Source: Ascidiella aspersa (lineage: Eukaryota). Taken from it: 64,000 nucleotides of DNA. Numbering within the stretch: position 1 is the stretch's first letter; every line of letters begins with the position of its first letter. This document shows positions 23,414 through 46,865 of this stretch, piece by piece. The notes under the pieces were generated by a model, which searched no databases, was not told where the DNA came from, and saw only the letters and a list, made by a program, of their open reading frames with translations. Made by a program: the position numbers and the translations under genes. The DNA is taken from the NCBI GenBank assembly GCA_963924565.1, contig OZ004610.1:7564001-7628000 (forward strand), given 5' to 3'.

Positions 23414-23503
23414 ATGAAGAAGTTTATTTTAGCATATCTATTTGGGATTATTTATTTCTGCTCCTTCATTTCCACAAAAGCTGCCATGGACCCAGTTTTC
23501 TTC
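23414..23503 (+). CDS. GH9-like gene coding exon 1: signal peptide
   Basis: ATG 23414; MKKFILAYLFGIIYFCSFISTKAAMDPVFF; GTAAGT donor at 23504. Confidence 0.8.
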
Positions 23504-26500
23504 GTAAGTATTTTATGTCTATAATATTATTGCACGTTTCAAAAGACAAAAGCAAGAATCTTTTCAGTATTTAGGAATTATTCGAGAAACAATTTCGTCT
23601 GTGAGGGTGACAATCAAAACAAACGCAAAAACAAAGTTTAAGTTTTGAAGTGTTATTCATCAAACCAGAAAAAGTTACAATCGTGTCAGTGCTGGTATCA
23701 TGCGGATTTACGTCTATTGAAATATGCTCACTCAATAACCATTGGTTTATCACCACATAAAGCCACAAAACCGAATAAAGTTTAATTGTCTTCTTACCTA
23801 TGTCCCCATTGTATCTTCGTAGGAGATTTTCTTTGTGCATTGCATAGAAGTCTTAAACGCACGTCACACCGCGCAAGTTTTGGGTGAGGTTGGGGTTAGT
23901 CAGATACCCCAGCAAACGTTAAGTTCCAGCTGGCATTATTAGGGTTCAAAATAAATTTATCTCAATTAGGTAGATTTTTAGCACTATACAATCCCCGCCA
24001 AGAATATACCCACAGTGTTGTACTGACTTCAGTCATTGTTTTTAAAAGACTTGATTTGACTTAAGTCGGCTTGAGAAAATGACTTAACTTTACTTAAGTT
24101 ATTTGGTCAAATAACTTTACTTGGACTTAAGTCATTAAGTCAAATGACTCGAGTTGTAATTAAGTGTTGTCATTTAACATTGTATTATAAAATTAGGATA
24201 TTGGGCAACTTTTGATTTGGACTTAAATTTGACTTTTTTTTTAAATATAGCTTGACTTGGACTTAAGTTATTTCACAAATGACTTAACTGGGAATTAAGT
24301 CATTTTTAAATGACTTATTTACAACACCAGGGAGTCGAACCGTTTGACTTTTCCGGTTCAGGTTCGGTTCGGGTTCAAGGATTTTTTCGGAATCCGGTTC
24401 AGTTCCGGTTTCGGTTCGGAGAAATTTAAAAGTTCCGGTTCAGCTCCGGTTCGACCATCGCTATTTCAAAACCGGTTCATAAAGTTCCGGTTCAGATACA
24501 ATATAATTTGCGTTAAATCTCAAAATGTGGGTCGATAAATGTAGAAAATAATCTTTGAATTGTAAGTCATTTACTCTGAGTTACGTGACGTATTAAAAAC
24601 ACAGTAACTCATTATTGAAATATCTAAAAAAAAAAATCTGCGTTTTATTTATTCAATATTCATATTTTTTCATAAAATTTTGAGCATGGCGTAAGTTGAC
24701 TCTGTAAAATAGAAGTTGTGGCGTCATGCAGGAGCGAACCGCTTTTATTTACAGGTTTGGGTTCGGTTAAGGTTCAGGTACTTTCTAATTATTCGGTTCA
24801 GTTCCGGTTCGGCTCCTTAAAATCTTATAAAAACCGGTTCAGGTTCGGTTACGGTTCGGAAAAAATTGACCCAAAACCGCTTCATAAAGTTCCGGTTCGG
24901 TTCCGGTTCGACTCCCTGCTGTATACCCATTAATGTGAGGAAAAATGTTAAACAGTGTTGTAAACAAGTAATGATAAAATGACTTTAGCCTGAGTCAAGT
25001 CATTGCCAAAATAACTTCAGTCCAGTTGTTGGTAAAAGTGGTTTGCCTAACCTAAACAGAGGCCAAGTCAGGCCATTTGTTAGATTTAGAACTTCTGAAG
25101 TCAAATCGGATCGTTTTGCCCCAAATAGGATATACATACAGTAGATTTGGGTCAAGTGAGTCAAACCGTCAAAACACTACACTTAAACCTCGATCTTGCT
25201 TTGCAGTTTGAACAGGACCCATGGCAGAACCAGACGCACGTTGGCTACGTCGGTCACTTTAAGATCCCGGTCAACGTTGAGCTGCGTAAATGGTGGATAG
25301 CACTCATCTACACGCACAAAGTCACCGAGTTTGATGCAAGTGCTGGTAGTTTTGTTTTAGTTGTTGAAAGGACCAATAAATATAGTCGGCTTCACTGGGC
25401 AACTTATACTTTACCGACTGAAATAAAATGTCATTTCGAGACATGTGCTGCCAATAGTACTGTTAGGACCTTTTAGAATTTTGTTTATTTTACGCATTCA
25501 ACTTTTCGTGCCGATTTAAGCTGAACTTTTAAAGTTAATGCATAATTTTACAAAAACAATTATGCGTTGTTCTGAGAAAAATTAGAAAACCGTATACTTT
25601 TAGTTAATATTTTTGTTTGAGTTGTGCAAAGGGTCAATGAATAGAGTTAGAAGGCAAATTGTATTTAACCGACTGACATAAAAAAAAAACTGTTTCGAAG
25701 AAAATAATGTCAATGCTACATTTAGGACGTTATACATCCATAAATTTTCAACAATTTATGCTTTGTTTTATTAAAAAGTCGGAAAGTCTTTACATTAAGA
25801 CTAGGCTATTGTTTTCGCCGGTCGAAAATCACAGTACAAATTTTAAAAAAATATTAGATAATAAGCCGTTGTTGGATAAAAGCGTGGACCCCCAGGATAT
25901 ATAACGACGTACTGCAAAAAACAAACAAGTTAGGAATGACTGAATAAAAAATCGCATTTTGGAATCAAAAAACGGACTTTTTCCAACATGTCTAATGTTG
26001 CTTAAAACGAATATACTGTTTGAGATGTAATTCAAAGACAGGCGTTTTTTCTTGGAATTTATCTCATTTTTAATAAAGCGATATAGCCGAAATTTAACAC
26101 TCGCTGTAATGTGATCCCAGGCTTGGCAGGCGCGCTACTGGAAGTCAAGCGATGATGGAAAGATTGTCTTCGTCAAGAACAAATCGTGGAACGGAAGGCA
26201 GAGACCAGGAGGAGTGTTGGATCAAAGGTCAGTTTCAAAATTAAAGCTTATACTTTGGAGCATACAATGGTTGGAAGTTGTAGTGAAACAAGAACACCCG
26301 AGTTGTTCATTTTCAATATCTTTGTTGAACTTCTATGTTGAAAATGAATCAAGAGTTAAACGTTCAAAATTATACCTATACTTCTGTATGGGCGGTGATA
26401 TTCTTACTGAAGCTTATACTCTTTAAGTACTCATCAACGATGGACGACAGGTTGTAGGACTAGACCCTATAGGGCAGGGGTCGGCAACCTTTTTCTAGTC

Positions 26501-29500
26501 GCGGGCCAAAACCAAACTCAGAAAGGTCTCTGCGGGCCGCAATAAGTGTATACTAAGAATGGTGTTATTAAAATGTTAGAGCAACTGTAAATCAGGCGAG
26601 CCTCAGGTCTTTTTTGTACTTAAAAACGTGTTTAATTATATTTAAGAAGGTAGTAAAGTGCTGACGGAAAGCGCGAAAAAAAGCTTTTATTTTGGTATTC
26701 CGGCATTTCTTTTAAATTTCTTGCAAGCTCTGTTTTATTACATTGCCGAAAAAAAAATAAAAAAAATAAAAAAATATATGTCCAATATTTTTGTATACGT
26801 GTTCCGTTTTTCGCGACACACGACAGCATCAAAACGTAAACAAATCGGATGTAGAATGATCATTCGTGCAAAGCGCGAAAATTTTTCGAACTTACGTAGT
26901 TAAAATGTATGTGAAATTGATTCGTGTCTAATTTGTCAAAGAGGCGGCGGGCCGGATGAACTACATCGGCGGGCCGCGGGCCGTAGGTTGCCGACCCCTG
27001 CCCTAGGGGTCTCCTGTTTGCTGTAGCTGGTACCAGGGCTTTGGAGTAAAAACTCAAAAAAAAAACAGTCAAGCCAAACTAAAAACCAGACAAACCAAAC
27101 TCCCCAGTACGACTAAGGCCGAAAAAATAAACTCGAATCCGACTCTCTAGTCCAGATTCGACTTTACAGCATAGTCTCCCTATTTCAAACAGTAATCCTC
27201 TCAAAGGGGGGAGCATATTATTCATTCAATTAATACGTGGTTCGAAAATATTCCATTATATGGTATTCCACTTTTACAACATACAGTTTGGGACCTTAAA
27301 ATTTGGTACTGCACATGCGCACCTATACGACGCGGGACACGGGTAGGCCTACGTAGTCTTACTCGAGTCCCGAGTTCGAGTTCGAGACCGACTCCGACTC
27401 CGACTCCGCAGCCCTCGCTAGCTCCCGGAAAAACAGGAGAGTTTAGCGGCCAAGGTTTGTCGTTTAGGAATAAAGAGTTGTTTAAGATACTCGACTCCGC
27501 TCAGTAACTAGCATTGTTGTTTTTTATTGCCTTTCACCGAGTCCGCGTTGCTCAGTCTGTGGAGCCACGGCCCTCGGAACGTTCGTTGTTGTAAGTGTGG
27601 TTTTATCACATGCTACTTTTGCGAACAATATGGAGCAACGGTGCTATATGGTTAGTTTAAGACTTGTGCACTAACTTGTTTAGTAGATACCCGAAAAACA
27701 GTCGAGGTCGCAAGTTGAAATTTAACGGCGGGCAGCTAGACAAACCATTATAAATTATATACTGGTCGACTGATTTCGGTCGAGGTCACTCGATGTTTGA
27801 ATTTGAGTTTATTTTTTATTATTCAATCAACGAATTTGAAAATCGAAGGCATTAAAATGCCGAGGTCGTACGTAGAACGATTGTTTTGCAGGCCCCAATA
27901 AAAATAGAAGTCCTGTAAACTCACACACGAAAGAAAGCATATAAACAAACGTAAAAAATGATTTGAAAAACAAGTAGTGTAAGTTATTTATTTATAAAGA
28001 CAAAAAAGTGCTTGAAAGTGACATAATTCTGGCTTTGTTATATTTTAATTAAACAAAATCAAATTCTGCTGTTTAGCTTCAAAACTACAATTCATGAATC
28101 GTGTTGAGATCTCTGGAGCATGTATCTGATCTTCAACAGTAAGGTTAATTGACTTATTTTGGTAGGTATTTAATCAACTACGAGAAGAAGCCTGGCATTG
28201 ATTACGATGAAGAGCCAACGATAAGACCTGTGATAGTCTTCCTCGAAAAGGTCTACATTCCCGACCCACTTGAATTCCAGGAAGCTCCCATGAGGGCGAT
28301 ACCGATCAAACAGGTGAGCGTTAACGGTTTAACTTATTTGTAACGTTTTTAGGCCTACTAACTCTTATATATCGGTATAAAGCAGGGGTGTCCAACACGC
28401 GGTACGCGTGCAAAATTTGGCATGCGTCCTTATAAAAAAAGGCACGCAAGTCCTCCAAAAATACTGTATTTGTTATACAGCCAATTTCATTGTTTATTCG
28501 CAATATAAAACAATAGCGGAAATCACGACAACTAATAATTACTGATATTATAGCATTTTATACTGTAGTGGAGGTTATATAGCTAGCGTTCACATAATTA
28601 TTGGTGTGAAGAAACAAGAAGCAAAAGTCAGCTCACCGACGGAAACTATAAGAGGCAGTAATGCGCATTTCTACTATACACAGCTTAATGCCAACCTACA
28701 TTCAGAGTTTAGCTGAAAACAAACGTTTGCCAAGGAGCATTTTTTTTTTTTTTTTTGATTAAATAAACAAATGTTTTTCATCAAAATAAACGATTTTATT
28801 TCTTGTAAGAAAGCGCTTTCAACATTAGAAATTTGGCACGGAAAGTAGTTATAGGTTAAAAATTAGCACATCGCCGTGTTTGCGTTGGGAAACCCCTAGT
28901 ATAAAGGGATGCAAAACCAAACAGTTTTTTCTAGCGCTGTTGGTCGTTTTCTAGATTGATGTTGTTTTACAGCAGTGACTTATATTAACCCATTGTTAGC
29001 AGCGGCTCAGAAATACAGCAAAAGGTTTGACGACTCAATTATCTCTCTGCTTTATAAAAAACAAAACAAAAAAAACATTGATATAATAGCATAAATAAGT
29101 TCGAATGTAATTCATAAGCGCCACTTTAAGACTTCCATTTCAGGGTTTCTCAATGGTGGCCCCCATCTCCCCCCTAGGGGACACAGAGAACTCATTGGGT
29201 AACCCAGGAGCATCTTATACTTCAACTAAGGGTTGTAAACACGTCATTCTGAAATGAAATAAGGGCCACTTAAGTAATTTAAAGTCCCAATCAAATCATT
29301 TATAAAATAACTTAAGTTCAACATAAGTCATTTATAAAATAACTTAAGTTCAAGATAAGTCATTTATGAAATAACTTAAGTTCAACATAAGTCATTTATA
29401 AAATAACTTAAGTCCAATTCAAGTCATTTTCAACAAATAGCAAGTCCCAGTTCAAGTCATTGATTACGCAAAAGTCGAAGCATTCGAAGAAAAAACTAAT

Positions 29501-32500
29501 AAACGTCTAGAAATGGTGAACACGTTCCATCCTGGGCGACATTTCAAATCATTGAAGTATATTTGCCTGACAATGTAGATTTGCTGCATTGGACCGCAAA
29601 TCATGGCTAAATTTCTATATTATTTAGGTGTCATATCGGCACCAAAAACACCTTGGTATCGGACTAGTTAACTACCGATACTGTCATTTGGTATCGGGTA
29701 TCGACTTTGATCCGATGTTATTAGACATCTCTAACAGAAACTTTAAAGAACATTCAATTAAATCAACAGCAACCTGTGAAATCTTTTAAATGTGCGAACA
29801 CTTTTTGACTCAGCACTTGTTTGTAATATTAACTGACATCCTTATTGGGTACACTATGCACGGATCTGTAATGTAGCTTGATAATGAATTGCAAAGCCAA
29901 AAAGGTCGAGTAGATCGACATTATCTTGATTAAGACGTTTCGATACGAGCTTGTATTATCTTCAGTTCATGTAACCGTCACATTAACTAAAGATGATACA
30001 AGCTCGTATCGAAAATCAAGATGTTGTCGATCTACTCGACCTTTTTGACTTTGCAATTCATATCAACTGACTTCCTTTTATACTTACTCTACTTTACAGT
30101 ACAACGGCTTCCCAGACAACTTCATAATGCTTCCTGTGGAAGTAATCGCCACTGAAGCCCCGGTAACCCGAAAGCCCCTGACCAAGGGTCCCGATTCGGG
30201 GGAGTTCTGGTGGGTCTACACGGACCCCCCTCCCGTCACCCGCCCTGTGCCAACTGCCAGGCGAAGGAACGTGCCAACGGCGATGACAGTTGCCATACGC
30301 GCCACTCCTGGCACTCCAGGTCAAAGGCAATACGGTAAGTGTCACGTATGAGGCGTCCGTCGGTCAAGGCTCAGTTTCTCAAACTGTGCGTCGCAAAGCC
30401 CTGGTGCATTGTTTTAAATTTTAAGGGCATCCCACAACAATCCCACTTCGTATCTAAAGTCAGCTGCAGACGAAATGCTTCCAAATAAACTAAAATTATC
30501 CCTTGACATGTGCATTCTTAAATCTAAATCATTATTTCGAAAAAGCTAAAGCGATTAATTTTAATTATATGCTACAAACAGACAAATAAATAAATAACAA
30601 AACATTGAGACTCCGGACAAGTTGGGTCGCAAGTCGAAAAACCTTCTTAAATTCGTAAAAAAAAAAGTTTGAGAACCACTGGGTTAAGGGGGTGGCCAAC
30701 CAGTCGTATATTAATAACTTATTCATGTTAACAGCAATTTTTTTTACAATAGACCAATTTTGAGGTGTCGGTATAAACCAGGCTGCGTAGTCGGACAAGG
30801 GACTCAAAACACTTGTAAAACCACACGATTCCCGAGTCCGACGTGCGCATGCCCGAGCCACATTTTAAAACTGATATGGCCGCGAACTGTAAATTGTAAA
30901 GGTGGAATAACATACGATGATTTTTTCCGACCATTGGTCGATGAACTTTATGACACCCCTAAGAGTGGATTTCGGAATATCCACGTTATTTTAGTCACGT
31001 AAATTGTGAAATATAGGCTGTAAGGTCGAACAAAGACTCATTTGGACAGAGTCGGACTCGGCTTTGGTTTATATTTTTTTGCCGGAGTTAAACTTCGGTT
31101 ATTTTAGCCGACTTAGGATCCCTGAACAACCTGGTCCGACTGCGATGCACAAATCCCTAACAAGTTGTTCGACTCGTTCGGCCCGGAGTCCGGCTCCGAC
31201 TCCACAGCCCTGTATATATAACATCAAACTCCAAACTAGTTTTTCATTCGAATTCCTAACATGCATTTACTTCATTCAGCGCTGCCTTGTCACGAGAGCC
31301 TGGCGCACCGACAGAACCGCTGCGTACAACTTGGCAAGCCAAAAGACGCCTGCTTCGAACCGCAGTGCTCGAGTTACGACGTGGCTCGCTACAGCGCGGT
31401 GCAGTGCTGGAAATACCAGGGTTCGTGCTGGTGCGTCGATTCCAGGACCGGAGCTCGCAGCTCGGATCAGGTGGTTAGGTTCAAGTTCATGCACAAGCTT
31501 TCCTGTATCGGCGGTGAGTTATTTCCTACTGTTGATCAGTGTTGTAAACAAGTCATTTTGAAATGACTTAAGTCACAGTCAAGGCATTTGTAAAATAAGT
31601 TGAGGGTATTTAAAAACACAAAAACAAGCCAAGTTCAAGTCGAGTCATAATTAGAACAAATCAGACTCACATGTCAAGTCCTTGTTATAAAAATATAACT
31701 TTTAACTATTTCGATTGGTAAAGTGGTCCATGATGAACAAAAACCGGACTGTGTCCCCAACGGCTATTTCAGTAAACCTGTTTGTTTATTTTTCAAATCT
31801 ACCCAGGTGATACAGTGATTACTTTTGGTCGTCCTTTTTAGGGTGATCGAAATTTTATGAAAAGTATTGTTCTACTGTTCAATTTGTTGGTTTTAGACAA
31901 TTTGAAATAGCATAAATATGCATATATACAATATATTAATTTTGCTGAAACGTCTTTTAAAACTATAAAACTAGATTTTTTTTTGTTTATTTAAAAAAGT
32001 ATATAATAAAGAAAATATGAATGCTATTTCAAGGTTAATTAGATTCGCTTTACTTCCCAAACCGATGAAATAAAACTGTAAAAATTCTAACTCATGGGCA
32101 ACCGTTCTCCGACAGGATCTGCAACCACGACCACGCCCACCACAATAAAGACCACGCCCCCTCCTGTGACCCTCGCTTCGGGGTCGGCAGCGTTGAAAAG
32201 GCCCCCGTTCGTACCAAGGAACAACTACGACTATAACGAGGTAAGGAAAATAAATTGCAAACTCAATATCAGGCTGCTGAGTCGGTTAAAAACAACCCGA
32301 GTTAGACTCCAGAGTCCAAAATCCGACTCTGGCTTCATTATGGTGATTTTGAGTCCCGAGTCCTGCTTCAACTCTACAGACCGTATTTAACCTATTTACG
32401 TTACTTGTGAATTTTTAGCACTCCAATCATACAAACGTGAATTTTCAGCACTCCAATCATAGGGCTGACATATAAGTTATCGTCACCATGCGTGGTTGGC

Positions 32501-35500
32501 ACATATTCTAGCAAATGCTATTGCATCCTTACAGTTCACAATTTCCAGCGTCATCAGTTTCAAAATTTGGTTTTGCGCATGCGCACGGCGGACTCAGGAC
32601 TGGGGTAGTTTCACGTTGTCTCACTCAAGTCCTGAGTTCGACACCAGCAAAAAAAAAACGACTCCGTCGAGTCCCAAATCCCGTGTCCGTCTCCGACTCA
32701 CAGCACAGCTCAATATATAACGAGGCGAAAGGTAACGTTTGGCCATCCGCCATATTGATGAAAAAAATAAAACAAGTTGTCAAATTATTTCTGGAAAGCA
32801 CAAATAAATTAATTTCTGGTAACCACTTTCTGGTAAGGTTTTCTGAAAAGCACGTCCCTGAAATTGACTTTTCATGTAGAGTTAATGATACCTGAAGTCC
32901 TCAACCTACCTTACAAAATCGTTAAAAAAGCTTTAGTGCACAATTTTTTTTATTTGCACAAAGTTTATATCCTACTGACAAATATCCTTTATTCTAACTT
33001 TTAAGTTACAGTCTGCGAAATGTTAAACAGCCCATATAGCATAGTTTATAAATCGGGTCAAACCTGCTGTGACAATTGTTCTGTGGAATTTTGATCCAAA
33101 TCTGAAACAGCATCGGGTTCAAAAATGAAAGCATCGGGTAGTAAACTGTTTTCCGAAATATAGCAAAAAAATTAAATCGTCTGCTCTCCTTAAATTGCAT
33201 TTTCGGTGTTGAAATGACTTTGATCGACAATTTTTAAACGTGAGCACACAATAAGGACTACAAATTAACAATATCTGAAGAAGAAGAAGAATCTATAATT
33301 CCATAGTACATAATATAGTTTTGGTGTTGGCGTTTCGGCGCCCTAGGTTGAACGACGTCTTTGGGGACACCGCTGTTTTGGCAGAGGACTGTTTTCCCTT
33401 TTGGGGGTGGGTGGGTTTGAAATTAGGTTAGAATCGTTGGTGATGTATTTAGGGGTGTTAGGTAAAACGTTGTATAGGCATTATTCTGGCCATTGTAGGT
33501 TTGTTTCGACATATTTCGGTCTTATTCCGACTTGGCGTTATTACGACTATTAGGTCGTCGGACAATTTCTCATGCAACTTGAGAATAAATTAAACTTTTT
33601 ATTAGCCCTATTTCGGTCTTACTCCGAAACGTAAAAACAAGGCAAGCTGCAAAAAATAAATAACTAAATTAGTTCAATTGAAAGTCAACAAAATGATGAT
33701 TTAAACATTTCCACTTAAACTAGTTAAAAGTCCCTCTTTCGTAACAAGAACCGACGTTGGTGTTTTTCTAATTTTCGGCCATTTAAACGGTTTGCACATA
33801 TAAGTTGTTTTTTTAGGTATTCAGATAAATGGCTTCGAATTTAAGATGCAAAGACGTCATATTCGACGATCCGGCACAACTAAAAAAACCATTGACCAAA
33901 AACTTTGCAGATCATCAGGAACTCGCTGCTTTTTTTCGAGGCGCAACGCTCGGGCAATCTCGATCGAAACAACAGGATTCTATGGCGGTCCAGCTCACAC
34001 ACCGCTGATGGAAAGGATTGCGGCAAAGTCGACTTGTCAGGAGGCTATTATTTATGTGAGTCGCATTCACCAATTGTTATAAGAATTATGTATTTCGCAG
34101 AGTAAAATCTTATTTAATTACTACCAGGGATGTCCGATAATATCGATTTGGAGACGATACCTGATAACAATTTCAAGTTTGGGTACTCGTACGATACATG
34201 TCAACTGATATCGCTGCCAATCAGATACCAAATTAATATAGGAATTTTAAAATAACCTCGGAACGTTTTAATTTTTTAATTTAATTTCGCGTGTTTAAGC
34301 ATAGTAATGACGTCATTTGGTATTGGCACGGATCGCGATACTTTTTGCGCAAAGTGTCGAGCATCAATATAGACATGAAATGTAAAGTATCGGACATCCA
34401 TTATAATGTCAATTTTTCGGACGTCGTACGCTTGACAGTTAATTTTGTTCAACGTTGCCTGTTTACCATTGTATAAAAAGTGAAACGTTAGAAGGTAGAA
34501 AGGGATATTTCTTTTTGAGGCAAATCAGTTAAATGCTATATTGTTTAGTTTTAGGCGTGTTTTTATGTTGGAAAAAAACTAAGCAAACTCTGTTTTTTAT
34601 GTTAATCGACTTATTATGTGTTGCATATACCTTGAACTAGTTTTGGACGTACATGATTACGAGCAGTCACATTAAAGTAGATCACAATGAAACCAATCTA
34701 TTTTTTATCATGCAGCCGGCGACTACGTGAAATTCGGCTTCCCGACTGCGTCCGCTCTCACCATGCTCGCTTGGGGTTTTCTCGAGTTTCCCGACTCATA
34801 TGTGAGCGCGGTGGAGACTGGACACCTCAAGCAGGCACTTAAGTGGGGAACCGACTACCTCCTCAAGACTCACCGCACCAAGTACAGCCTTGTCGGACAG
34901 GTACGAATTGCTATGTGAAAGCGCCGCTGCTTTACTTCCAAATATGTCGCAACTAACTTAATAGTGACTTCGTGACTTGAAGGTGCTGATTCAAGTTAAA
35001 TGCAAGCCTCTTTTTGAACAAATCTCTGTGAATTTTACATCTTGGACCCAAATTGCTCGATTTTTCTTTCAGTCTTTCGGACAAATTAACTGACTTAAAT
35101 TGATGTCGACAAATCCCATTGGTTTTCAAAATGACTTAACGTGGTATTGAGTGATTTAGACTCATTTGGTTAAATACTGGATCAGTTGACCTGGTATCGA
35201 TATCGGAATCGGCTCTTATGTTGCAATCTTTAAACGTAACTGAAAAAGCCATGTAATTTCGCATCGGAGCCGATAGCCACGGTACAATGCCGATCTCATA
35301 CATAATCGATATATAGTCATTTCAGTTGAGGTTCGCGATGCACTGTAGCGATTTTAATTCGCAAACTTTATACAATATATTGCGTTAACACCCAAATATA
35401 ACTAAACCTCTAAGTCTGAACGCTTAAGAAAAGTTTGATGACCAAAAGTCTCGTTTTCATTTAATTTAATGTTTCATGGTGATTTGCTTAATTAATCGTT

Positions 35501-38500
35501 GTGTAATAAAAATACTCATTGTGCAATATTAGAACAATTCAGCCCGATATAATGTTTGTGCTCTTCTAAAAAGGCCCGATATCACATCGAAAAATAGATA
35601 GTTGGAAAATTGGTGTTGTTTTGCTCATTTTACTGCATTAGCAAATAAGCCTTCGTTTGGCGCTTCGAAAAATTATTTTCTTGCATGAAGTATCCCGTTG
35701 CTCCAACAGGTTGAAAAACCTATGACGTACCGGTAACCAATACTTGAATCTGTCAAAATCAAGCTTCAAATTATTTGCTCCTTAGGTTGGCAACCCGGAG
35801 CGGGAAAACGCATTCTGGACTCGGCCAGAGCACATGAGGATCCCCAGGCCTTGCTTCAACATCACCAGCAAGAGTCCTGGATCCGACCTCGCAGGGGAGA
35901 CTGCTGCTGCAATGGCCGCCACTGCCAAGGTTTGGTTGGCAACTGGAAGCTCTATGCGTGAGTTTATCTCCACTGGTAATTGGTAACTGTTATAGGAGGT
36001 TATAATCAAGTACGAGTAGCAAAGTGGTAGCGCAAGCAGGGCCAAATCATGCCTTTTAGAGGTCCTAAACTTTTATATTTTGGTGCCCTATATGAGTCAT
36101 TCAAAATATAAACACAGAGTATAAATATAGAGAGGTTCAAGATGATACTTAAGAAAGAAAAATAAGCTAAAATGTATTTTAACTGGGACATTATTGAGGT
36201 CTAAGTCGTCTGACCAACTCGAATTGTGTCGTTAAACACTGAGGCACCATTTAAAATTGTTTTCCTTTGTGCCCTATGCACATGCGTATTTTGCTTAATG
36301 GTTCAGCCCTGAGGAGAAGAGTATATATGGTAGACCTTTGCCAAGTTCTTCGTTATGTAGGAGGAAAAACTGAATCAAGAGTCACTATTACCAACTATTG
36401 TCTGTAACTTTGACATGTTCTTCTTTCAGTTGAGTTTGAGTAGCAAGTGGTAGCACCAATATTTAGTATCTAATATTACGAGTTTAGTTTGTAAGATTTC
36501 AGTTATGTCTCGCCAAAAGTAACCATAACAGTAAGCTAAGTTCATAAAATAGTGAGTACATTTTGGTAAAAGTTAAGCTTGATAATGCCTCACTGAAATC
36601 TGAGGAATAACTGCTCCCAAAAGTGGATTAGTCAATCGCGCATGTTTACTTTAATAAAGCTTTGATCTAATAAGTACAGCAACTAAAAACACCACTATTG
36701 GGTATAAATTCACATACGTTTAATTCAACAGTATTTCGTTTAGGTCTGCTGACGAAAAAGTGTACCTAGAATAAGTATCAATTACTGAATTGTAACATCA
36801 AATATGATACAGTCAAGTCTGAGGAATAGCGCATCAGTAGAGACTATACAAATTATTCAATAGAGACTATACAAATTAAGTCCAACAACTATTGCACCAA
36901 CGAGAGATTTATCTCGATATTGCAAACCTTGTGTATCGATAAGCGGTTAATAATATTGGAGTAGGCCTATAACTTTGTAATTTATATATGAATTTCTAAC
37001 GTGGTCATGTATATTTTTTAAGGTTAAAAGTTTTACAAAGAGTAGCAAACCCTTTACCATTTCGTAATTTATATAATTTCGTCAAAAGCCTAAAAATTGG
37101 ATTCTCTTCTTGTATTTAGTACAAATCACGGTTTACAATCCAAAGTTAAACTTCACGATCTGAAAAACTTACGTCCATAATAATAAACCTTGTATTTTTC
37201 GGCAAATCAAGTCTTTAAAAGGTGTGCAACTTTTCTTGTTTATTTTAAGGTGATCCCTACGTCATCACTCTGCTGAGTCACGCTCGGGACCTATATGACT
37301 TCGCACTAAAGTTTCGCGGAATTTACTCGAATTCGATGCGTGCGGCTCGAGACTTCTACCCTTCGTCGGGGTGAGTTTAAAACAAATAACATAACCGGTT
37401 AAAACGTAATAAAATCGACATTTCGCAGTTTACAGACGTTTTAGCAATATTTTTTGCACTGATGATGGCATGATGCCCATCTACTCGACCGTTTTGACTT
37501 TGCAATTCTTTATCAAGCTAGAGTTGTATTGTGCATGAGTAGAATAATGTTATATTTATATTAAAATAACACAAATAACTCCACAGATACGGGGACGAGA
37601 TAGTGTGGGCTGCCCTTTGGCTCTACCAGGCCACTGGCGAGTTGCGCTACCTAGCGGACGCGGGCCGACTGTACCGCGAGTTCGACCTGGACAAGAAACA
37701 GGGGGACGTGTCCTGGGACAACAAGGTGGTCCCTGTCCAGATCCTGATGGCCAAGAACGCCATGAAGGCCGGGGCGCCCAACGCCGGTCAAGCCTTTCTT
37801 AATTCGGTGGTCGGCTTCTGTAACTTTAAGTTGCCAGGTGGGTGGATGTTAAGGTTTTGGGGTGTTTTCTTGTTTTTTAGTTTGTCATTTGATTGGCCTG
37901 ATTTGAAATATGTTAGGTTGAAATGATCTTGTTGTTGGTATTAAAGCTTTCGTACGTGTGCAAGTCACCTTTCGAACCGCATATATAACCATTGTTTTTC
38001 ACACTTATTTTTTGTGTCAAAAATTAAATGAAAAAATGAAAAGTTTTTAAGTCATTTGAAATAAAAATTTATTTTTTTATTTCTAATCATTTATTGCTTT
38101 TAAATATTGGCCAGGGGCACTTTCAATACCATTGTTAGGTTGTGTTCCATGAAAAAAACAGCAATTCGAGCAATAAACAAAACAATTTTTGCCATTTCAT
38201 TAATTTTTAATAAATCTCAAAGCCAAAAAGTGCGAGTAAACCGACATGATCTTTATAACGAGGTTTCGATACGAACTTGCAACATGTGATACAAGTACTT
38301 ATCGAAACGTCTTTAGACTCTTTATCAAGATGATGTCGATTTACTCGACCTTTTTGGCTTTGAGATGTATTATTAAGCTATATTACATATCCGTGCATAG
38401 TAAACCTCTTCACTTTCAGTTGTTAAAAAATAGGATTAAGAAGTCACGTTTGTGTTTTAAGGAAAACACACACGACACAAAGATGGTCAACGTTGTTATT

Positions 38501-41500
38501 TTTGCATTTCAGGCGGTGGTTCGAGATACACACCTCAGGGACTCCTGTTTGTCAACGAGTGGGGAACAAACAGATACGCAATGAACTCGGCCTTCGTCTG
38601 TCTTGTGGCATCTAAAATGCCCGAGCTGGACAGCGTAAAAAAGCGAAAATACAGGTTCGGAATGTGCTGATACTCAAACCATGCCTTCTAAAATTGAGGA
38701 AGTCACCTTATATTTTATGATAATATTAAGAGCGAAACTTTTTTACATCTCTAAGGTCAAACAAATTTAAACTCACTGCTAAAAAATAATAGTCAGTCAA
38801 TATAGAATTAAAAATGTCTATCTAAGTTATTTTCAACAGACAACAAGGCAAGTATCAGTTAGTATTTATAATTATTCACCAGCAATCCAAATCAGCATTA
38901 AATAAAATGTACGTTTAACACTTTGAAAGAGTTCTGAAGTCCACTCAATTCATAACAGCACATCATAAAAAAAATTATCGTTATTATTTATTATTACTGT
39001 GAAAATCTCTCTTGTGACTTTGTATAAATCATTTTTCAATTTGCGAGAAAGCAGGGGCACAAAGTGTTGAGAGTCCATTACCGTGCAGCTGACTGGAAGG
39101 TCCATTGGACCTTCGCTGCTCCGGCCGTATCGCGCGTGAATTTGTTTTTTGTTATAGCTTACTTGTGTATTTTAATTTAAGCGCTAACGGAAAAATAAAC
39201 ATTACTTACATTAAAGGTGGTCACCACTCATAACGTATTAAAACCAGGGCTGCGGAGTCGGGCTCGGGACTCGACGAAGTCGGTTTATTTTGCTGTAGTC
39301 GGACTCGGGACTCGAGTAAGACCACGTAAAATACTCGAGTCCCGAATCCGACGTACGCATGCGAAGTACCAAAATTCGAAACTGATAAGGCAGCAAACTG
39401 TTAATTATAAAAGTGTGATAGCAAATGGTAAAATATTTTCCAACCATGTATGTTTAATGGATCAGTTATATGACGGTGACTGGATGAAAGCCACCATTTA
39501 GCCGGAGTCGGACTCGAGACTCGTGAGTCCGGCTCGGGTTAATTTTTTATCTGGAGTCGGTCTCGGGAGTTATACTAGAGTTATTTTAAACCGGCTCCCC
39601 AGTCCTGGTTAAAACCACTGGTCTAAAGACTTCTATAGGTCTATTCCAATAGTAAAAAGTGTGAAATTTCAAAGAATCCGTTTTGTTGTCGGTCATCTTC
39701 TGCATTTAAAACGGTACTTCGATAGGAACTACTGATATTTTTTTCTAATAATAAGAAAACGGTACTCGGATGGGAAGCACTGACATTTTTTCTTATTAGG
39801 TATTTATCCGTTTTTTTTCTAATTTTTTAATTATCCAAGAGCGATTTGCTTTTATTGTGGCTTTGCTTTTTTAAGCATCATTTGTAATCTTTCGTTTTCA
39901 CGTGTAACGCGCAGGAAGTTCGCAGAAGACCAGATGGACTACATCCTGGGCAAGACCGGTAAAAGCTTCGTGGTAGGATACGGCTCGTACTACCCGGATA
40001 GACCACACCACAGATCCAGGTCAGTAAATTCGCTCCATGGCAATGTCATTACGCTGAAAATTAACTTTACAGTATATCGCAACGCGCTGACAATACCTCT
40101 CGTGTTGGGGCATGGGTTGGGTTCAGCTCAAGCCTACCATATTTTCTTGCTTTTGTATACGCTTAAGTCAGCGGACGCCTAATTTGATTTTTATAAAGCT
40201 GGATAACTGAAGATTTTGACGATTCCAATCCAACTCGTTTCTCAAATTTTGGAGAAGGAAATAACTGAATTATATAAATACTTCTTGCAAAACAAGCCTT
40301 AAGGGCTAAAATGCCTAGTATAGTTGTTTACCAAAAATATCCACCGAAAGGATTTGTTTGCCAGGCAGTTATTTTTTCCATAGTGGCGATTTTGCTTGCA
40401 AACAAATCGTATTTTTGTGGCTAACGAGGAAGCCTGGTATATTATCACACATTATCATCGGCCATCTTAAATTTAAAAGTGGCCGACATTAGTTACATAT
40501 TATATACATGTCACCATTTTAAAGTAATTTAATCAGGCCACAAGTTGCTTCTTTTTACACAAGGTCAACTATTAAGTTATCCTCGTAGTTTCAGTACCGA
40601 AGGATGTATTTTAGTGGGGAAAGTAGAATAATTTTTTAGAGGAACGATAAAACATTTTCTTAATGAAACGCATGATATTTTCAGACAAAGTTACGTCATA
40701 CCGAATAGTCAAAAATAAAAAAACCTTCGGGTGTAACTTTCCTAAAAAGTAACCTTCGGTAACCTAAGGGTATCGCTCGATGTAAAGCAGAAATATACAG
40801 CTAGGCCTGTCGAGAATAGAAATTCTTTTTTTATTGACGTGAAGAACCTAAAAACATTGTTTTTCTTTTTTGCCGTTCCGGCGGCAATTATTTTACTAAA
40901 ACGCCGTTTCCGGCTTACTTTCAGCGCCGACATTGAAATATTTCGCACATTTAAAACCCGCGCGCTTTCTTGCAGTTCGTGTTCGATGGCGGGCGCATGC
41001 GGGTGGGATTTCTACAACAAAGACTCTCCGAACCCCCAGGTGCTGGTCGGGGCCATGGTGGGCGGACCGGACGAGCTGGACGGCTGGCAGAACGACCGGA
41101 CCGACTACAAATCGAACGGCGTCTCGCTGGACCACAACGCCGGGCTTCAGAACACTGCCGCAGGTAATAGATAAACAACGAACTGTAAAGTGCAAGTGTG
41201 AGGCGGTATATGTATGTACATACATAATATTTCGCTATTAAAGCATCATAAGTATCCAAACACATACCACAATATGCTTTAATAGCAAAATATATTTATC
41301 ATATTATAACATCTAAACAAACTGATTTTCGGTTTACTAAGTTCTGTACTTGGTTTAATCTTTATCATTGATGTGCAGCCAGACTCGTTTGTTTTCACCA
41401 TTCGGATTCAGGCAGATTTGTTTTTCGAAATTAATTTTGATTACACAGTGCTGTCATGCATATAGCAGTAAAATAGGTAATAATGTAGTGAAGCGTAGAG

Positions 41501-44500: not shown

Positions 44501-46865
44501 AGAATAGCGTAGGCGGTTTTCAAGCGGTCAATGGAAACGTTATCAGGTTTTCCATTTTTGTCAAGCTTGAAGTACTTGTTGCTTCTGTCAAGAACTTTGT
44601 ATGGCCCGTCATAGAGTGGGGCCAGGCTTGGTTTTGAAGCGTCGTTTCTCACGTAGACGTGTTTGCAGGTCATCAATGCCTTGTCGACGTAATTGGGCCT
44701 TTTATTTCGCGGCCGTGTCGGCTTGTATCGCTGTTTGTCCATGTAGGAGCGAATTTTGCAAAGAATACTTCCTGATGTTGCCTCGCTTTCTGGCGACGTA
44801 GTGGCAAAAACGTCATTGGGCAATTTCAGTCTTTGGCCGTAGAGAAGTTCTGCTGGCGAGCACTGTAAATCCTCTTTCCACGTTGATCGTAATTGCAGCA
44901 TAATGAGCGGCAGGTTGTAGTACCAGTCCTCTGCTGAAGTCTGTGCTCTTAGACACGATTTTAGCTGTCTGTGAAATCTTTCGATTTGGCCGTTGCTTTG
45001 TGGATGAAACGAGGTGGTTGTATTGTGTTGTATCCCCAAATATTCCATCATTTCCTTCCACTGGTGTGATGTGAACTGAGATCCACGGTCTGTGGTCAAA
45101 GTGTTGCATATTCCATATCTTGAAATCCAGGTGTATAGAAAAGCTTCTAACACAGTTTCGGTTGTTATGTCTTTTAGAGGTGAAACTTCGGTATAACGAG
45201 AAAAACGATCCGTCATGGTTAGAATGTACCTGTAACCGTTGCTGTTGTTTAACGGTCCCACTATGTCGGCGTGCACACATTCGAATCTCCTCTCAACTGG
45301 TTGGAATCGTCCAATTGGAGTGAAATTGTGCCGTGTCACTTTGCAAGTCGCGCATTCGTGACATTGTCTGGTCCAGATGCGAACGTGCTTTTTCATATGT
45401 GGCCATACATAGCGTTTTGCAATCAGTTCGATGGTGGGTTTGATTCCTGGGTGGGTCACGGAGTGTAGAATCCGGAAGACGTGATGTCTGAACCCTTGCG
45501 GAATGTATATTCTTGGCACAGAGCTGGAAGTGTCACACCATAATTCCGTCTTCATGGTTGGTGGAGTGAGTTTTTGTAGTGACATGCCAGTGCCGTTGTC
45601 CTATAGGGCTTTCAATTCTGGGTCTTCTTCTTGCGCTTGTGCGATGGCTTTCCAGTCGATCGCTTCCGTGTTGAGTTGAATGTGATTGAGCGCGTTTCTA
45701 GACAAGTGGTCGGCTACGACGTTATCCTTTCCTGCTACATGCTCCATGGATGTGGCGAATTCGGCGATGAAGACCAAGTGTCTCGCTTCTCGCGGAATTA
45801 TGCGATCCGCATTCGATGTGAAAGCGTGAACGAGAGGCAGATGGTCGGTGAAAATCGTTGTTTCTCTCTCTCCAATGTAATATATGAAGTGTTTCACCGC
45901 AAGGTAAATGCCAAGTAATTCGCGTCCAAACGCGGAACTGTCGTCTCTCTAATTGTCGAGATTTTTAGTCCGTTTTTTTGCCTGCTTTTGATTGCAATGT
46001 TCTGTCTTCAGATATCTTCCGAAGAACAAGGGGGTCACCAGTGAAGCGTAGAGGGGTGGTGTTGTAGGGAGCTATAGGAAAGCTGCTGACCCTATAGACG
46101 AGGGCCGACGGCTGCCTAAGTCTCTTACAAGTTCTTAATCCGACTCCAAAGGAGCAGGCCCCTAGAATACCTGTCCTTAACTTCTTGTACTCTAAGCAAA
46201 GACAATCCACTCAGTAGATAGTTGCTCTTAGAGTATATTCACAAATCTCAGAAATACAGCGATAAACAGAGCGGTGATTCAAGCCGCTAATCAGTAAGAC
46301 GTATAAAGTAGAATGAATTGTCAAATGCGGAAAAGCAATTCGCGAGGCGCGGTGGTCACACATCAGTGGACAATGGTCACGTGTATAGTGACGTAAAAGT
46401 AGGCTAAATGCTACAGTAGTGCTTTTTGTTTTATGTTTTTATTTGTTTTTTCTAAACGAATTATTCATTTATTGTGGCTGATACTTGTGTATCATTTTAT
46501 TGCAAATTGTTCCGACATTCTGCGCCATTCAACCACATACAGGCCGCTTTAACGACCTACAAATAACACTACTAAACACTGCTTTTATAAAACGTGACTT
46601 ACAACAGCTTTAGTGGTCGATAATCAATTCCGACAGACATAATTTACATAAACTGTTGCTACTGCGTCATTTATCCTGAGGAAAGCTACGCAAATAAGTC
46701 GTCAAAACGTTGAAGTCATATAATTATCAGAGGAACTGTTTTTAGATTCTGATATATTTTATTTTTTATTTCACAAATAACTGAGCTTGTCATTTGATTT
46801 CAGGTCTTCGACACTTTCAGCTCGAGTACGACGCTTGGCTGAGACAGGAGCGTAGCAATTCGTGA
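23414..46865 (+). CDS. Secreted multidomain GH9-family (cellulase-like) protein: SP-CBM2-linker-thyroglobulin type-1-linker-GH9; 16 coding exons, ~812 aa; catalytic residues substituted
   Basis: Hand-spliced exons 23414-23503, 25207-25335, 26121-26227, 28166-28313, 30100-30334, 31280-31513, 32116-32240, 33911-34055, 34716-34900, 35786-35957, 37250-37370, 37587-37837, 38513-38654, 39915-40019, 40976-41163, 46804-46865. Total 2439 nt, phases consistent, no internal stop. GH9 motifs: LLFFEAQRSG, DLSGGYY, KFGFP, KWGTDYLLK, PGSDLAGETAAA, DEIVWAALWLY, SWDNK, PHHRSS, GAMVGGPD, DHNAG. Confidence 0.9.
24013..24921. mobile_element. GACTT-rich MITE with a nested GGTTC-rich MITE (24328-24918)
   Basis: Outer CAGTGTTGTA...TACAACAC/CTG with TSD TATACCCA; inner TIR CAGGGAGTCGAACCG. 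Confidence 0.8.
25207..25335 (+). CDS. GH9-like gene exon 2: CBM2-like N-half
   Basis: TTGCAG acceptor; FEQDPWQNQTHVGYVGHFKIPVNVELRKWWIALIYTHKVTEFD; ends at a GCAAGT (GC) donor. Confidence 0.8.
26121..26227 (+). CDS. GH9-like gene exon 3: CBM2-like C-half
   Basis: CCCAG acceptor; AWQARYWKSSDDGKIVFVKNKSWNGRQRPGGVLDQ (CBM2 'N..WNG...PG' motif); GTCAGT donor. Confidence 0.85.
26475..27000. mobile_element. hAT-type MITE (related partial copy from ~63624)
   Basis: TIR CAGGGGTCGGCAACC; imperfect TSD CTATAGGG/CCCTAGGG. Confidence 0.8.
28166..28313 (+). CDS. GH9-like gene exon 4
   Basis: TAG acceptor, phase 2; YLINYEKKPG...MRAIPIKQ; GTGAGC donor. Confidence 0.8.
28383..28898. mobile_element. hAT-type MITE, same family as 9153-9630
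   Basis: CAGGGGTGTCCAAC start; TSD GTATAAAG; shares internal sequence in the opposite orientation. Confidence 0.82.
29296..29420. repeat. ~31-bp minisatellite (about 4 copies) inside a GACTT-rich MITE
   Basis: CATTTATAAAATAACTTAAGTTCAACATAAGT-like units in tandem. Confidence 0.8.
29878..30066. mobile_element. Inverted-repeat Penelope-like fragment with a minimal hammerhead motif (relatives at ~37470-37520, ~38218-38362, ~56350-56430)
   Basis: Long hairpin; minus arm reads CTGAAGA-T-AATAC-AAGCTC-GTATC-GAAACGTC. Confidence 0.6.
30100..30334 (+). CDS. GH9-like gene exon 5: Pro/Thr-rich linker
   Basis: TTTACAG acceptor; YNGFPDNFIMLPVEV...PPPVTRPVPT...GQRQY; GTAAGT donor. Confidence 0.85.
31280..31513 (+). 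CDS. GH9-like gene exon 6: thyroglobulin type-1 domain
   Basis: PQC...Y.AVQC....SCWCVDSRTG signature; TTCAG acceptor and GTGAGT donor; phase 1-1. Confidence 0.9.
32116..32240 (+). CDS. GH9-like gene exon 7: Thr/Pro linker and start of GH9 (YDYNE)
   Basis: GACAG acceptor; SATTTTPTTIKTTPPP...NNYDYNE; GTAAGG donor. Confidence 0.88.
32270..32708. mobile_element. GAGTC-rich MITE family (other copies 11559-12123, 27034-27416, 30779-31212, 39245-39607)
   Basis: CAGG(G)CTGC(G)GAGTCGG...CGACTC(C)(G)CAGCCCTG-like termini; 8-bp TSD CTCAATAT here. Confidence 0.8.
33911..34055 (+). CDS. GH9-like gene exon 8
   Basis: IIRNSLLFFEAQRSG...DLSGGYYL; TTTGCAG acceptor, GTGAGT donor. Confidence 0.93.
34716..34900 (+). 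CDS. GH9-like gene exon 9
   Basis: GDYVKFGFP...KWGTDYLLK...LVGQ; TGCAG acceptor, GTACGA donor. Confidence 0.93.
35786..35957 (+). CDS. GH9-like gene exon 10
   Basis: VGNPERENAFWTRPEHM...PGSDLAGETAAAMAA; CTTAG acceptor, GTGAGT donor. Confidence 0.92.
37250..37370 (+). CDS. GH9-like gene exon 11
   Basis: DPYVITLLSHARDLYDFALKFRGIYS...FYPSS; TTTAAG acceptor, GTGAGT donor. Confidence 0.9.
37587..37837 (+). CDS. GH9-like gene exon 12
   Basis: YGDEIVWAALWLYQATGE...SWDNK...; CCACAG acceptor, GTGGGT donor. Confidence 0.92.
38513..38654 (+). CDS. GH9-like gene exon 13
   Basis: YTPQGLLFVNEWGTNRYAMNSAF; TTTCAG acceptor, GTTCGG donor. Confidence 0.9.
39915..40019 (+). CDS. GH9-like gene exon 14
   Basis: FAEDQMDYILGKTGKSFVVGYG...PHHRS; GCAG acceptor, GTCAGT donor. 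Confidence 0.93.
40976..41163 (+). CDS. GH9-like gene exon 15 (contains the catalytic-acid position, here Gly)
   Basis: SCSMAGACGW...PNPQVLVGAMVGGPD...DRTDYKSNGVSLDHNAG; TTGCAG acceptor, GTAATA donor. Confidence 0.93.
41489..41862 (-). repeat. 3' LTR
   Basis: Direct repeat of 46042-46415 (3 mismatches seen by eye); preceded on the minus strand by the polypurine tract GGAAGGGGAA (41866-41875). Confidence 0.95.
42420..44471 (-). pseudogene. env: env-like glycoprotein gene (class III / gB-like), broken by two frameshifts (~44175, ~43225)
   Basis: Three overlapping ORFs join into ~680 aa: hydrophobic signal FSFLLLILYILFLPLATP, Cys-rich ectodomain, long helix, TM WIQGIICFLVIQACIWGM, cytoplasmic tail. 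Confidence 0.85.
44362..45937 (-). pseudogene. pol: Truncated pol: RNase H C-half plus integrase, with an in-frame TAG at 45601-45603
   Basis: SAFGRELLGIYLAVKHF...FTDHLPL (RNase H); HSVTHPG...CHEC zinc finger; HADIVG/TDRGSQF/HPQSNGQIERFH DDE core; LYDGPYKV. gag, PR and RT are absent. Confidence 0.92.
46031..46040 (-). promoter_or_regulatory. Primer binding site, tRNA-Trp type
   Basis: TGGTGACCCC is complementary to the ...GGGGUCACCA 3' end of eukaryotic tRNA-Trp. Confidence 0.8.
46042..46415 (-). repeat. 5' LTR
   Basis: Direct repeat of 41489-41862; followed on the minus strand by 1 nt and the PBS. Confidence 0.95.
46804..46865 (+). CDS. GH9-like gene terminal exon 16
   Basis: TTTCAG acceptor, phase 1, continuing AAG-LRHFQLEYDAWLRQERSNS*; candidate AATAAA at 47190-47195. 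Confidence 0.75.

Follow-up and report, generated by a model that had tools for sequence, protein, structure and literature searches.

The window examined here is a 64,000-nucleotide stretch of the Ascidiella aspersa genome (C4:7564001-7628000), and the gene that concerns us within it encodes a glycoside hydrolase family 9 (GH9) domain in which several catalytic residues have been replaced. The gene is intact, with 16 exons between positions 23414 and 46865 of the window on the + strand, 2439 coding bases, a predicted protein of 812 amino acids, no internal stop codons, and a TGA stop codon at 46863-46865. A first-pass annotation of this DNA had described an intact 16-exon frame spanning 33911-41163; the exon count and the intact frame stand, but that span holds only the eight main GH9 exons. 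We located exon boundaries by local tblastn, guided by the orthologues from Phallusia, Ciona, and Clavelina described below, and then read the junctions in the sequence. All 15 introns have usable splice sites, as the first-pass annotation had claimed, although one of them (25336-26120, after exon 2, with donor GCAAGT at 25336) is GC-AG and the remaining 14 are GT-AG; we call the exceptional intron GC-AG because no in-frame GT donor yields the length of the orthologues. Aligned with the 809-amino acid Phallusia protein, the full 812-amino acid model is 62.5% identical with only 15 gap positions. The encoded order is a signal peptide, a module resembling carbohydrate-binding family CBM2, a Pro/Thr linker, a thyroglobulin type-1 module, a Thr/Pro linker, and the GH9 domain, and the protein is predicted to be secreted. 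The exons are as follows (pLDDT, predicted local distance difference test).

Exon 1, 23414..23503, + strand: ATG at 23414 and hydrophobic signal peptide; aligns with the start of the Phallusia orthologue (P0157).
Exon 2, 25207..25335, + strand: opens the CBM2-like module; tblastn queries P0157, P0158, and P0159; GC donor at 25336.
Exon 3, 26121..26227, + strand: second part of the CBM2-like module, with a WNG motif; tblastn and translated model.
Exon 4, 28166..28313, + strand: end of the N-terminal beta-sandwich module; tblastn, model, and structure prediction of the orthologue.
Exon 5, 30100..30334, + strand: Pro/Thr-rich linker; disordered in the orthologue model (pLDDT <50, orthologue residues 174-230).
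Exon 6, 31280..31513, + strand: thyroglobulin type-1 module in a phase 1-1 exon; Pfam PF00086, E 2.8e-9.
Exon 7, 32116..32240, + strand: Thr/Pro linker and start of the GH9 domain; tblastn and model.
Exon 8 (GH9 exon A), 33911..34055, + strand: ends in GGYY-Leu, with TTA at 34052-34054; Pfam PF00759 positions 6-54.
Exon 9 (GH9 exon B), 34716..34900, + strand: finishes a Ser codon, then Gly-Asp; aligned to Cel9A 57-110 and NtEgl 56-116.
Exon 10 (GH9 exon C), 35786..35957, + strand: Glu-Asn at 35804-35809 replacing Asp-His before W.RPE.
Exon 11 (GH9 exon D), 37250..37370, + strand: 77.5% identity to the Phallusia orthologue (P0157).
Exon 12 (GH9 exon E), 37587..37837, + strand: SWDNK motif; Pfam PF00759 positions 214-281.
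Exon 13 (GH9 exon F), 38513..38654, + strand: WGTNRY motif.
Exon 14 (GH9 exon G), 39915..40019, + strand: PHHR motif.
Exon 15 (GH9 exon H), 40976..41163, + strand: Gly GGC at 41118-41120; His at 41133-41135 in place of the DYNAG Tyr; NtEgl alignment.
Exon 16, 46804..46865, + strand: C-terminal tail GLRHFQLEY..., stop TGA at 46863-46865; tblastn with P0157 and P0159.

To place the altered residues we aligned single exons to GH9 enzymes of solved structure, including the termite endoglucanase NtEgl (1ks8) and Thermobifida fusca Cel9A. All three of the motif changes noted in the first-pass annotation fall on catalytic positions. Exon H aligns without gaps to NtEgl (1ks8 residues 370-424), and its Gly codon (GGC, 41118-41120) occupies the position of NtEgl Glu412 and Cel9A Glu424, the general (catalytic) acid of those enzymes; in the same exon the DYNAG motif reads DHNAG, with Tyr replaced by His (41133-41135). 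The final full codon of exon A (TTA, 34052-34054) specifies Leu at the position of Cel9A Asp55, the first Asp of the DAGD motif. The codon split across exons A and B (T, then CC) specifies Ser at the position of Ala56. Exon B then begins with Gly-Asp, which lines up with Cel9A residues 57-58 and preserves the second DAGD Asp (34721-34723). In Cel9A, Asp55 and Asp58 activate water, the second Asp being the proposed base. Lastly, exon C encodes Glu-Asn (GAA AAC, 35804-35809) at the position of Cel9A Asp124-His125, where Asp-His is present in all four of the solved GH9 chains aligned; His125, or the Asp-His pair, hydrogen-bonds to the catalytic base residues. The gene therefore lacks the general-acid Glu, a complete DAGD Asp pair, and the Asp-His that precedes W.RPE.

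Conversion of Asp to TTA requires three base changes and that of Glu to GGC requires two, the same counts that the first-pass annotation had given. Two further DNA runs from the same species cover positions 40804-41317, and in these exon H differs only synonymously (at 41021 and 41111) with the Gly codon unchanged. We rejected an error of sequencing or assembly as the source of the substitutions, given the agreement of the Gly codon in these two runs and the occurrence of the substitutions in the orthologues. Alternative splicing that recreates DAGD was likewise rejected: a second in-frame GT/AG pair is absent from the junction, paralogues have their intron at the same position, and LSGD is what the Phallusia protein itself contains. 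Indeed, the Phallusia orthologue reads GGYYLSGD, which supports the predicted splice junction between exons A and B.

A search of 1.84 billion representatives with exon E yielded P0004 and P0013, both of them full-length relatives encoded on Logan contigs. With P0004 as a second query we recovered a family of eight orthologues, every member of which contains both PF00086 and PF00759. Four of these are from named species: Phallusia mammillata (A0A6F9DSI0), Ciona intestinalis (XP_026695442.1, annotated as 'endoglucanase 13-like'), Clavelina lepadiformis, and Styela clava (LOC120327569). The other four lie on contigs of 2.6-2.8 kb that are nearly filled by uninterrupted open reading frames (ORFs) of 786-833 amino acids; these contigs are taken to be spliced transcripts because the window gene has 15 introns across 23 kb. 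At the catalytic sites the eight orthologues read [L/V/Q/H]-S-G-D, E-[N/E], and N-[G/S/A]-V, and the Phallusia protein shares the exact Leu, Glu-Asn, and Gly of the window gene. Retention of DAGD and N-E-V by orthologues, which the first-pass annotation had named as telling against a selected pseudo-enzyme, is thus not what we find, eight of eight being without the same residues as the window gene.

Maximum-likelihood analysis of 58 GH9 domains placed the window gene and the eight orthologues in one clade with a Shimodaira-Hasegawa-like approximate likelihood-ratio test (SH-aLRT) value of 100. The Phallusia protein was sister to the window gene (SH-aLRT 99), while Styela and one contig-derived sequence branched off first within the family, in agreement with ascidian phylogeny. 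All members recovered by the searches run are tunicate-type sequences. The shared substitutions and the single clade indicate that loss of the catalytic residues predates the split of the sampled ascidian orders, a split that is hundreds of millions of years old.

Two mayfly GH9 proteins, P0012 (Ephemera danica KAF4527166.1) and P0027 (Cloeon dipterum XP_065337461.1), read T-x-G-R in place of DAGD and N-D-V in place of N-E-V. In the tree they adjoin the tunicate family with an SH-aLRT value of 90, a placement that may reflect long-branch attraction. Among animals, GH9 proteins whose catalytic residues have changed may be more common.

Our alignment held 132 GH9 domains, 104 of which have the canonical Asp, Asp, Asp, His, and Glu, and across these 104 there are 100 columns that are at least 90% conserved. 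All nine family members keep the canonical residue at 64 of the 100 columns, and only five are replaced in all nine: Asp55, Ala56, Asp124, His125, and Glu424. Asp124 and His125 are each 100% conserved among the canonical domains. Chance does not account for the same five positions having changed in nine of nine members. Within the family, 129 of 456 positions of the GH9 domain are invariant (n = 9); the motifs SW(D/E)xK, PHHR, DE(L/I)xW, and GGPD are present in nine of nine members, the PHHR motif having been reported as preserved from the outset, and WGxxRY is present in seven of nine.

This pattern of retention bears on the idea that the protein is an enzyme with changed chemistry, one using the retained second Asp with another acid, acting on another substrate, or serving as a transglycosylase-like remodeller. 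The second DAGD Asp is invariant in nine of nine members, as are most of the cleft motifs, and the family-specific invariant residues include carboxylates at domain positions 117, 169, 343, and 344, all of which would suit such an enzyme. Against it, the Gly, Ser, or Ala found at the acid position cannot protonate a leaving group, and with the first Asp changed to Leu, Val, Gln, or His and the His to Asn or Glu as well, one catalytic network has taken three hits. Furthermore, when we screened the family-invariant residues at the level of sequence, no family-specific carboxylate that could compensate adjoined the lost acid. We regard an enzyme of altered chemistry as quite unlikely.

The rate of divergence provides a second view of selection on the gene. 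Over 444 columns of the GH9 domain the window gene and its Phallusia orthologue share 70.5% identity; as a control, the active-type GH9 gene at C2:17.63 Mb is 71.3% identical to its own Phallusia orthologue over 439 columns. A comparison of Clavelina with Phallusia gave 61.7% for the dead family and 63.0% for an active-type GH9. Four exon differences are listed among DNA samples of the same species; three are synonymous and none is an indel, though the sample is small. One further DNA run was considered as a second-species comparator and rejected, its pieces being near-identical to the window. Divergence no faster than that of a live GH9, together with family-wide changes that are confined to catalytic residues, argues that the gene is a selected pseudo-enzyme and is not decaying, as the first-pass annotation had proposed and as the intact ORF would also have it.

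With regard to the fold, five GH9 exons scanned individually each matched Pfam PF00759 (Glyco_hydro_9) at 43-66 bits. A profile scan of the genome added matches to two more exons, and jointly these matches cover, in order, profile positions 4-441 except ~167-213 (exon D). Five orthologues that we scanned cover positions 1-443 at 424-455 bits, a full-profile match. The AlphaFold model of the Phallusia orthologue (mean pLDDT 84.5) contains three confident modules, a beta-sandwich (residues 26-153), a thyroglobulin-1 module (~231-305), and the GH9 domain (from ~345), with disordered linkers between them. Its GH9 part superimposes on endoglucanases of termite, earthworm, and polychaete (the structures include 1ks8, 3wc3, and 8ihy) with template modelling (TM) scores of 0.95-0.96 and root-mean-square deviations of 1.6-1.8 Å; for the earthworm and termite enzymes the values are 0.96 and 1.6-1.7 Å. 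As judged from this model, the GH9 domain of which is 70.5% identical to that of the window protein, the latter is predicted to adopt the GH9 (alpha/alpha)6 barrel.

The thyroglobulin type-1 module (PF00086) was detected in the window at 31240-31563 with 36.7 bits (E 2.8e-9, cut-off 20.6), and the repeat is present in five of five orthologues scanned. For the N-terminal module, the evidence of likeness to CBM2 comes from the orthologues and not from the window gene's own module. When the module of the orthologue family was compared with nine Pfam-defined CBM2 modules, hhalign gave a probability of 96.5% (E 9.5e-10). The top three clusters in the ESM Atlas were CBM_2 (0.88-0.89), with structure matches to CBM_2-containing clusters at TM scores of at most 0.65, and Foldseek matched the module to the Cellulomonas fimi CBM2 6qfs (E 4e-4).

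In the protein P0208 (JGI), the CBM_2 region doubles as a match to Pfam GD_N ('serine protease gd N-terminus'). One 90% cluster also unites a GH9 protein with a 'serine protease gd-like' protein of Cloeon. Together these hint that the GD_N module may be related to CBM2.

The 308-Mb genome in which the window lies has ~13 GH9 loci. For the 12 outside the window we assembled rough exon-chained models, approximate at split codons, and in these seven have canonical and five have degenerate catalytic motifs (C1:12.56 Mb, C4:26.09 Mb, C4:26.92 Mb, C4:26.94 Mb, and C2:32.25 Mb), bringing the loci with degenerate motifs, the window gene included, to ~6 of 13. None of the five falls inside the clade of the window gene in the tree, and their substitutions differ from those of the window gene. 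These five loci are losses separate from that of the thyroglobulin-1/GH9 family, and the window gene represents an independent dead-GH9 lineage. The two junctions compared, A/B and the one following exon H, have introns at the same positions in the window gene and in active paralogues.

Motif examples from the degenerate loci at C1:12.5585-12.566, C4:26.92-26.945, and C2:32.2475-32.2598 Mb are GGYF-V/GGYVKY with N-V-V, ASYVKY with N-S-V, and L-H-V. The loci at C4:26.92 and C4:26.94 Mb are adjacent, and the Ciona proteins P0163 and P0164 likewise have GH9 matches in two separated blocks.

The tunic role offered for the window gene in the first-pass annotation turned on the host being a tunicate, and two results show that it is, and more narrowly that it is an ascidian nearest to Phallusia of the species compared. 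The closest proteins among the species compared are those of Phallusia mammillata, and on C5 a Glyco_trans_2_3 match (C5:19610502-19611038) is followed 2.8 kb downstream on the same strand by a Glyco_hydro_6 match (C5:19613851-19614090). A GT2 domain accompanied by GH6 is the arrangement of tunicate cellulose synthase (PMC10334666), and C5:19610502-19614090 is likely CesA.

The introns of the window gene contain several repeats. Within the last intron (41164-46803), direct repeats of 300 nucleotides at 41487-41786 and 46040-46339 are 99% identical and lie around ~4.3 kb. The repeat-flanked element (41487-46339) has several minus-strand ORFs, one of which (44362-45585) contains integrase core and zinc-binding domains; it looks like a recently inserted long terminal repeat (LTR) retroelement lying antisense to the gene, and it accounts for the strong GC/AT skew at 42-46 kb. 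Contigs from two other DNA samples of the species skip a 302-base stretch (38116-38417) in the intron that separates exons 12 and 13, and the sequence on either side of this stretch is part of a very high-copy repeat. Here a small repeat element is polymorphic for its insertion.

Taken together, we think it likely that the window gene encodes a selected, most likely non-hydrolytic, glucan-binding secreted pseudo-enzyme belonging to an ascidian-wide family. The gene is the single-copy orthologue within a family of predicted secreted proteins that combine a CBM2-like module, a thyroglobulin-1 module, and a GH9 domain. That domain lost the general-acid Glu, the first DAGD Asp, and the Asp-His pair in an ancestor common to the ascidian species compared, while on this reading purifying selection kept the remaining fold and the cleft motifs. 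Hydrolysis of beta-1,4-glucan would most likely be impossible for such a protein. Instead, the CBM2-like module may dock on crystalline cellulose, the dead GH9 cleft may hold a single glucan chain without cutting it, and the thyroglobulin-1 module may provide a contact with a matrix protein or act in protease inhibition. A further argument for cellulose binding is that the protein carries this CBM2-like module. That the protein might organise the animal's own tunic cellulose is a speculative extension.

Several points weigh against the reading of a selected, glucan-binding pseudo-enzyme. The presumed loss of hydrolytic activity draws on mutant studies of other GH9 enzymes, and the retained second DAGD Asp leaves room for residual or altered chemistry. 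Cellulose binding is suggested at the level of fold, from a module that we would describe as CBM2-like; Pfam CBM_2 (PF00553) gave no match for exon 2 of the window and, in the orthologues, gave only a match below cut-off, in Styela (E 0.017). A young LTR element sits inside the last intron. Finally, in the sole RNA run, of which ~6% was read and for which the tissue is unspecified, depth is 0 to ~1 on exons 10-15, the exons to which our read comparisons apply, with no junction reads, whereas intronic repeats in the same run are covered 10-40 fold. The gene is at most weakly expressed in the RNA sample examined.

Those RNA reads fall on high-copy repeats within the introns (39150-39550, 37350-37550, and 41150-41749, with word depths of thousands to >100,000), and adjacent exons draw none.

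The last two of these points would be expected if, whatever the fate of its orthologues, the copy in this species had fallen silent or had newly begun to decay: there are nearly no reads on exons 10-15 in the one run, and the ends of the LTR element remain 99% identical over 300 nucleotides. However, the ORF of 812 amino acids has no stop or frameshift, all 15 introns keep usable splice sites, identity to Phallusia is on par with that of the active paralogue pair, and the exon differences listed from two other DNA samples are mostly synonymous (three of four) and include no indel. The RNA evidence itself comes from a small part of one run of unspecified tissue. We therefore consider a silent or decaying copy very unlikely, and the orthologue transcript contigs argue for expression of the family elsewhere.

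A different question is whether the protein, if it is a conserved non-enzyme, has some other ligand or task. It could be a gut or mucus binder of glucans from algal food, a lectin that recognises foreign beta-glucans in immunity, or chiefly a protease inhibitor of the thyroglobulin-1 type carried on a glycan-binding scaffold. Thyroglobulin-1 modules elsewhere inhibit cysteine proteases, and no result of ours places the protein in epidermis or tunic. In addition, a paper on tunicates calls animal GH9 enzymes digestive (PMC10334666). Weighing on the other side, and suggestive only, are the restriction of the family to tunicate-type sequences in the searches run, tunicates being makers of cellulose, and the presence of further dead GH9 genes in the same genome. 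A ligand or task of this other kind strikes us as unlikely, and we favour the secreted, glucan-binding pseudo-enzyme described above.

A broader proposal, possible but doubtful, is that this ancient ascidian CBM2/thyroglobulin-1/dead-GH9 family grips single cellulose chains and thereby assembles, caps, or cross-links tunic cellulose. The family would then be an animal counterpart of the expansins and chi-lectins, and together with other dead-GH9 lineages of independent origin it would make up a tunicate cellulose-matrix toolkit.

To our knowledge, tunicates are the only animals that synthesise cellulose, and how that cellulose is ordered into a tunic is largely unexplained. The family described here is a conserved candidate that can be tested in the model species Ciona and Phallusia. 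The 'endoglucanase' annotation that its members carry in these two species is contradicted by the lost catalytic residues, and, with ~6 of the 13 loci of this genome degenerate, counts of GH9 genes overstate the cellulolytic capacity of animals. Published work on tunic cellulose focuses on CesA and GH6-1 (PMC10986139, PMC10334666), and further glycosidase genes that shape the larval tunic are still being sought (PMC10986139). In the tunicate papers found, GH9 is described only as a digestive enzyme of animals (PMC10334666) or as expanded in the house-building epithelium of Oikopleura (bioRxiv 10.64898/2026.03.31.715263). In a literature search with incomplete full-text coverage we found no paper on a catalytically dead tunicate GH9 or on a fusion of thyroglobulin-1 with GH9. 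Pseudo-glycosidases are already known as a class, of which the dead-GH9 family would be a further example rather than a new category.

The closest known relatives are the animal GH9 endo-beta-1,4-glucanases, such as termite NtEgl (1KS8), earthworm EF-EG2 (3WC3), and a polychaete enzyme (4ZG8), which share the sequence family and the fold; the Phallusia orthologue matches 1ks8 at 389 bits. In contrast to these active hydrolases, the family has lost three residues of the catalytic network (acid Glu, first Asp, and His) and adds the N-terminal CBM2-like and thyroglobulin-1 modules, and the window protein is most likely not a hydrolase. The five other degenerate GH9 loci of the genome are likewise GH9 folds with degenerate motifs, but they stand outside the thyroglobulin-1/GH9 clade and have other substitutions.

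Resemblances of a more distant kind are found in other families. The GH18 chi-lectins (YKL-40 and the insect IDGFs) similarly have a glycosidase fold that is missing its catalytic acid but keeps its cleft, and are secreted with a glycan-binding role in matrix or signalling; they differ in being TIM barrels of another family, with chitin as ligand and no homology to GH9. Expansins and swollenin, which have a GH45-like fold with incomplete catalytic machinery, pair a cellulase-derived fold with a cellulose-binding module and act on cellulose without hydrolysis. Their fold and lineage are different, and expansins have an established loosening activity. Within the same animals, the GH6 domain fused to the tunicate cellulose synthase is also a cellulase-type domain that lacks a key catalytic residue in a cellulose-related context; that domain was acquired horizontally, while the window gene is a GH9 from the animal GH9 stock and its product would be secreted. 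Lastly, plant KORRIGAN (class A GH9; PMC10986139) is a GH9 that serves the production of cellulose, and not digestion, in a cellulose-making organism, although it is membrane-anchored and catalytically active, unlike the protein predicted from the window gene.

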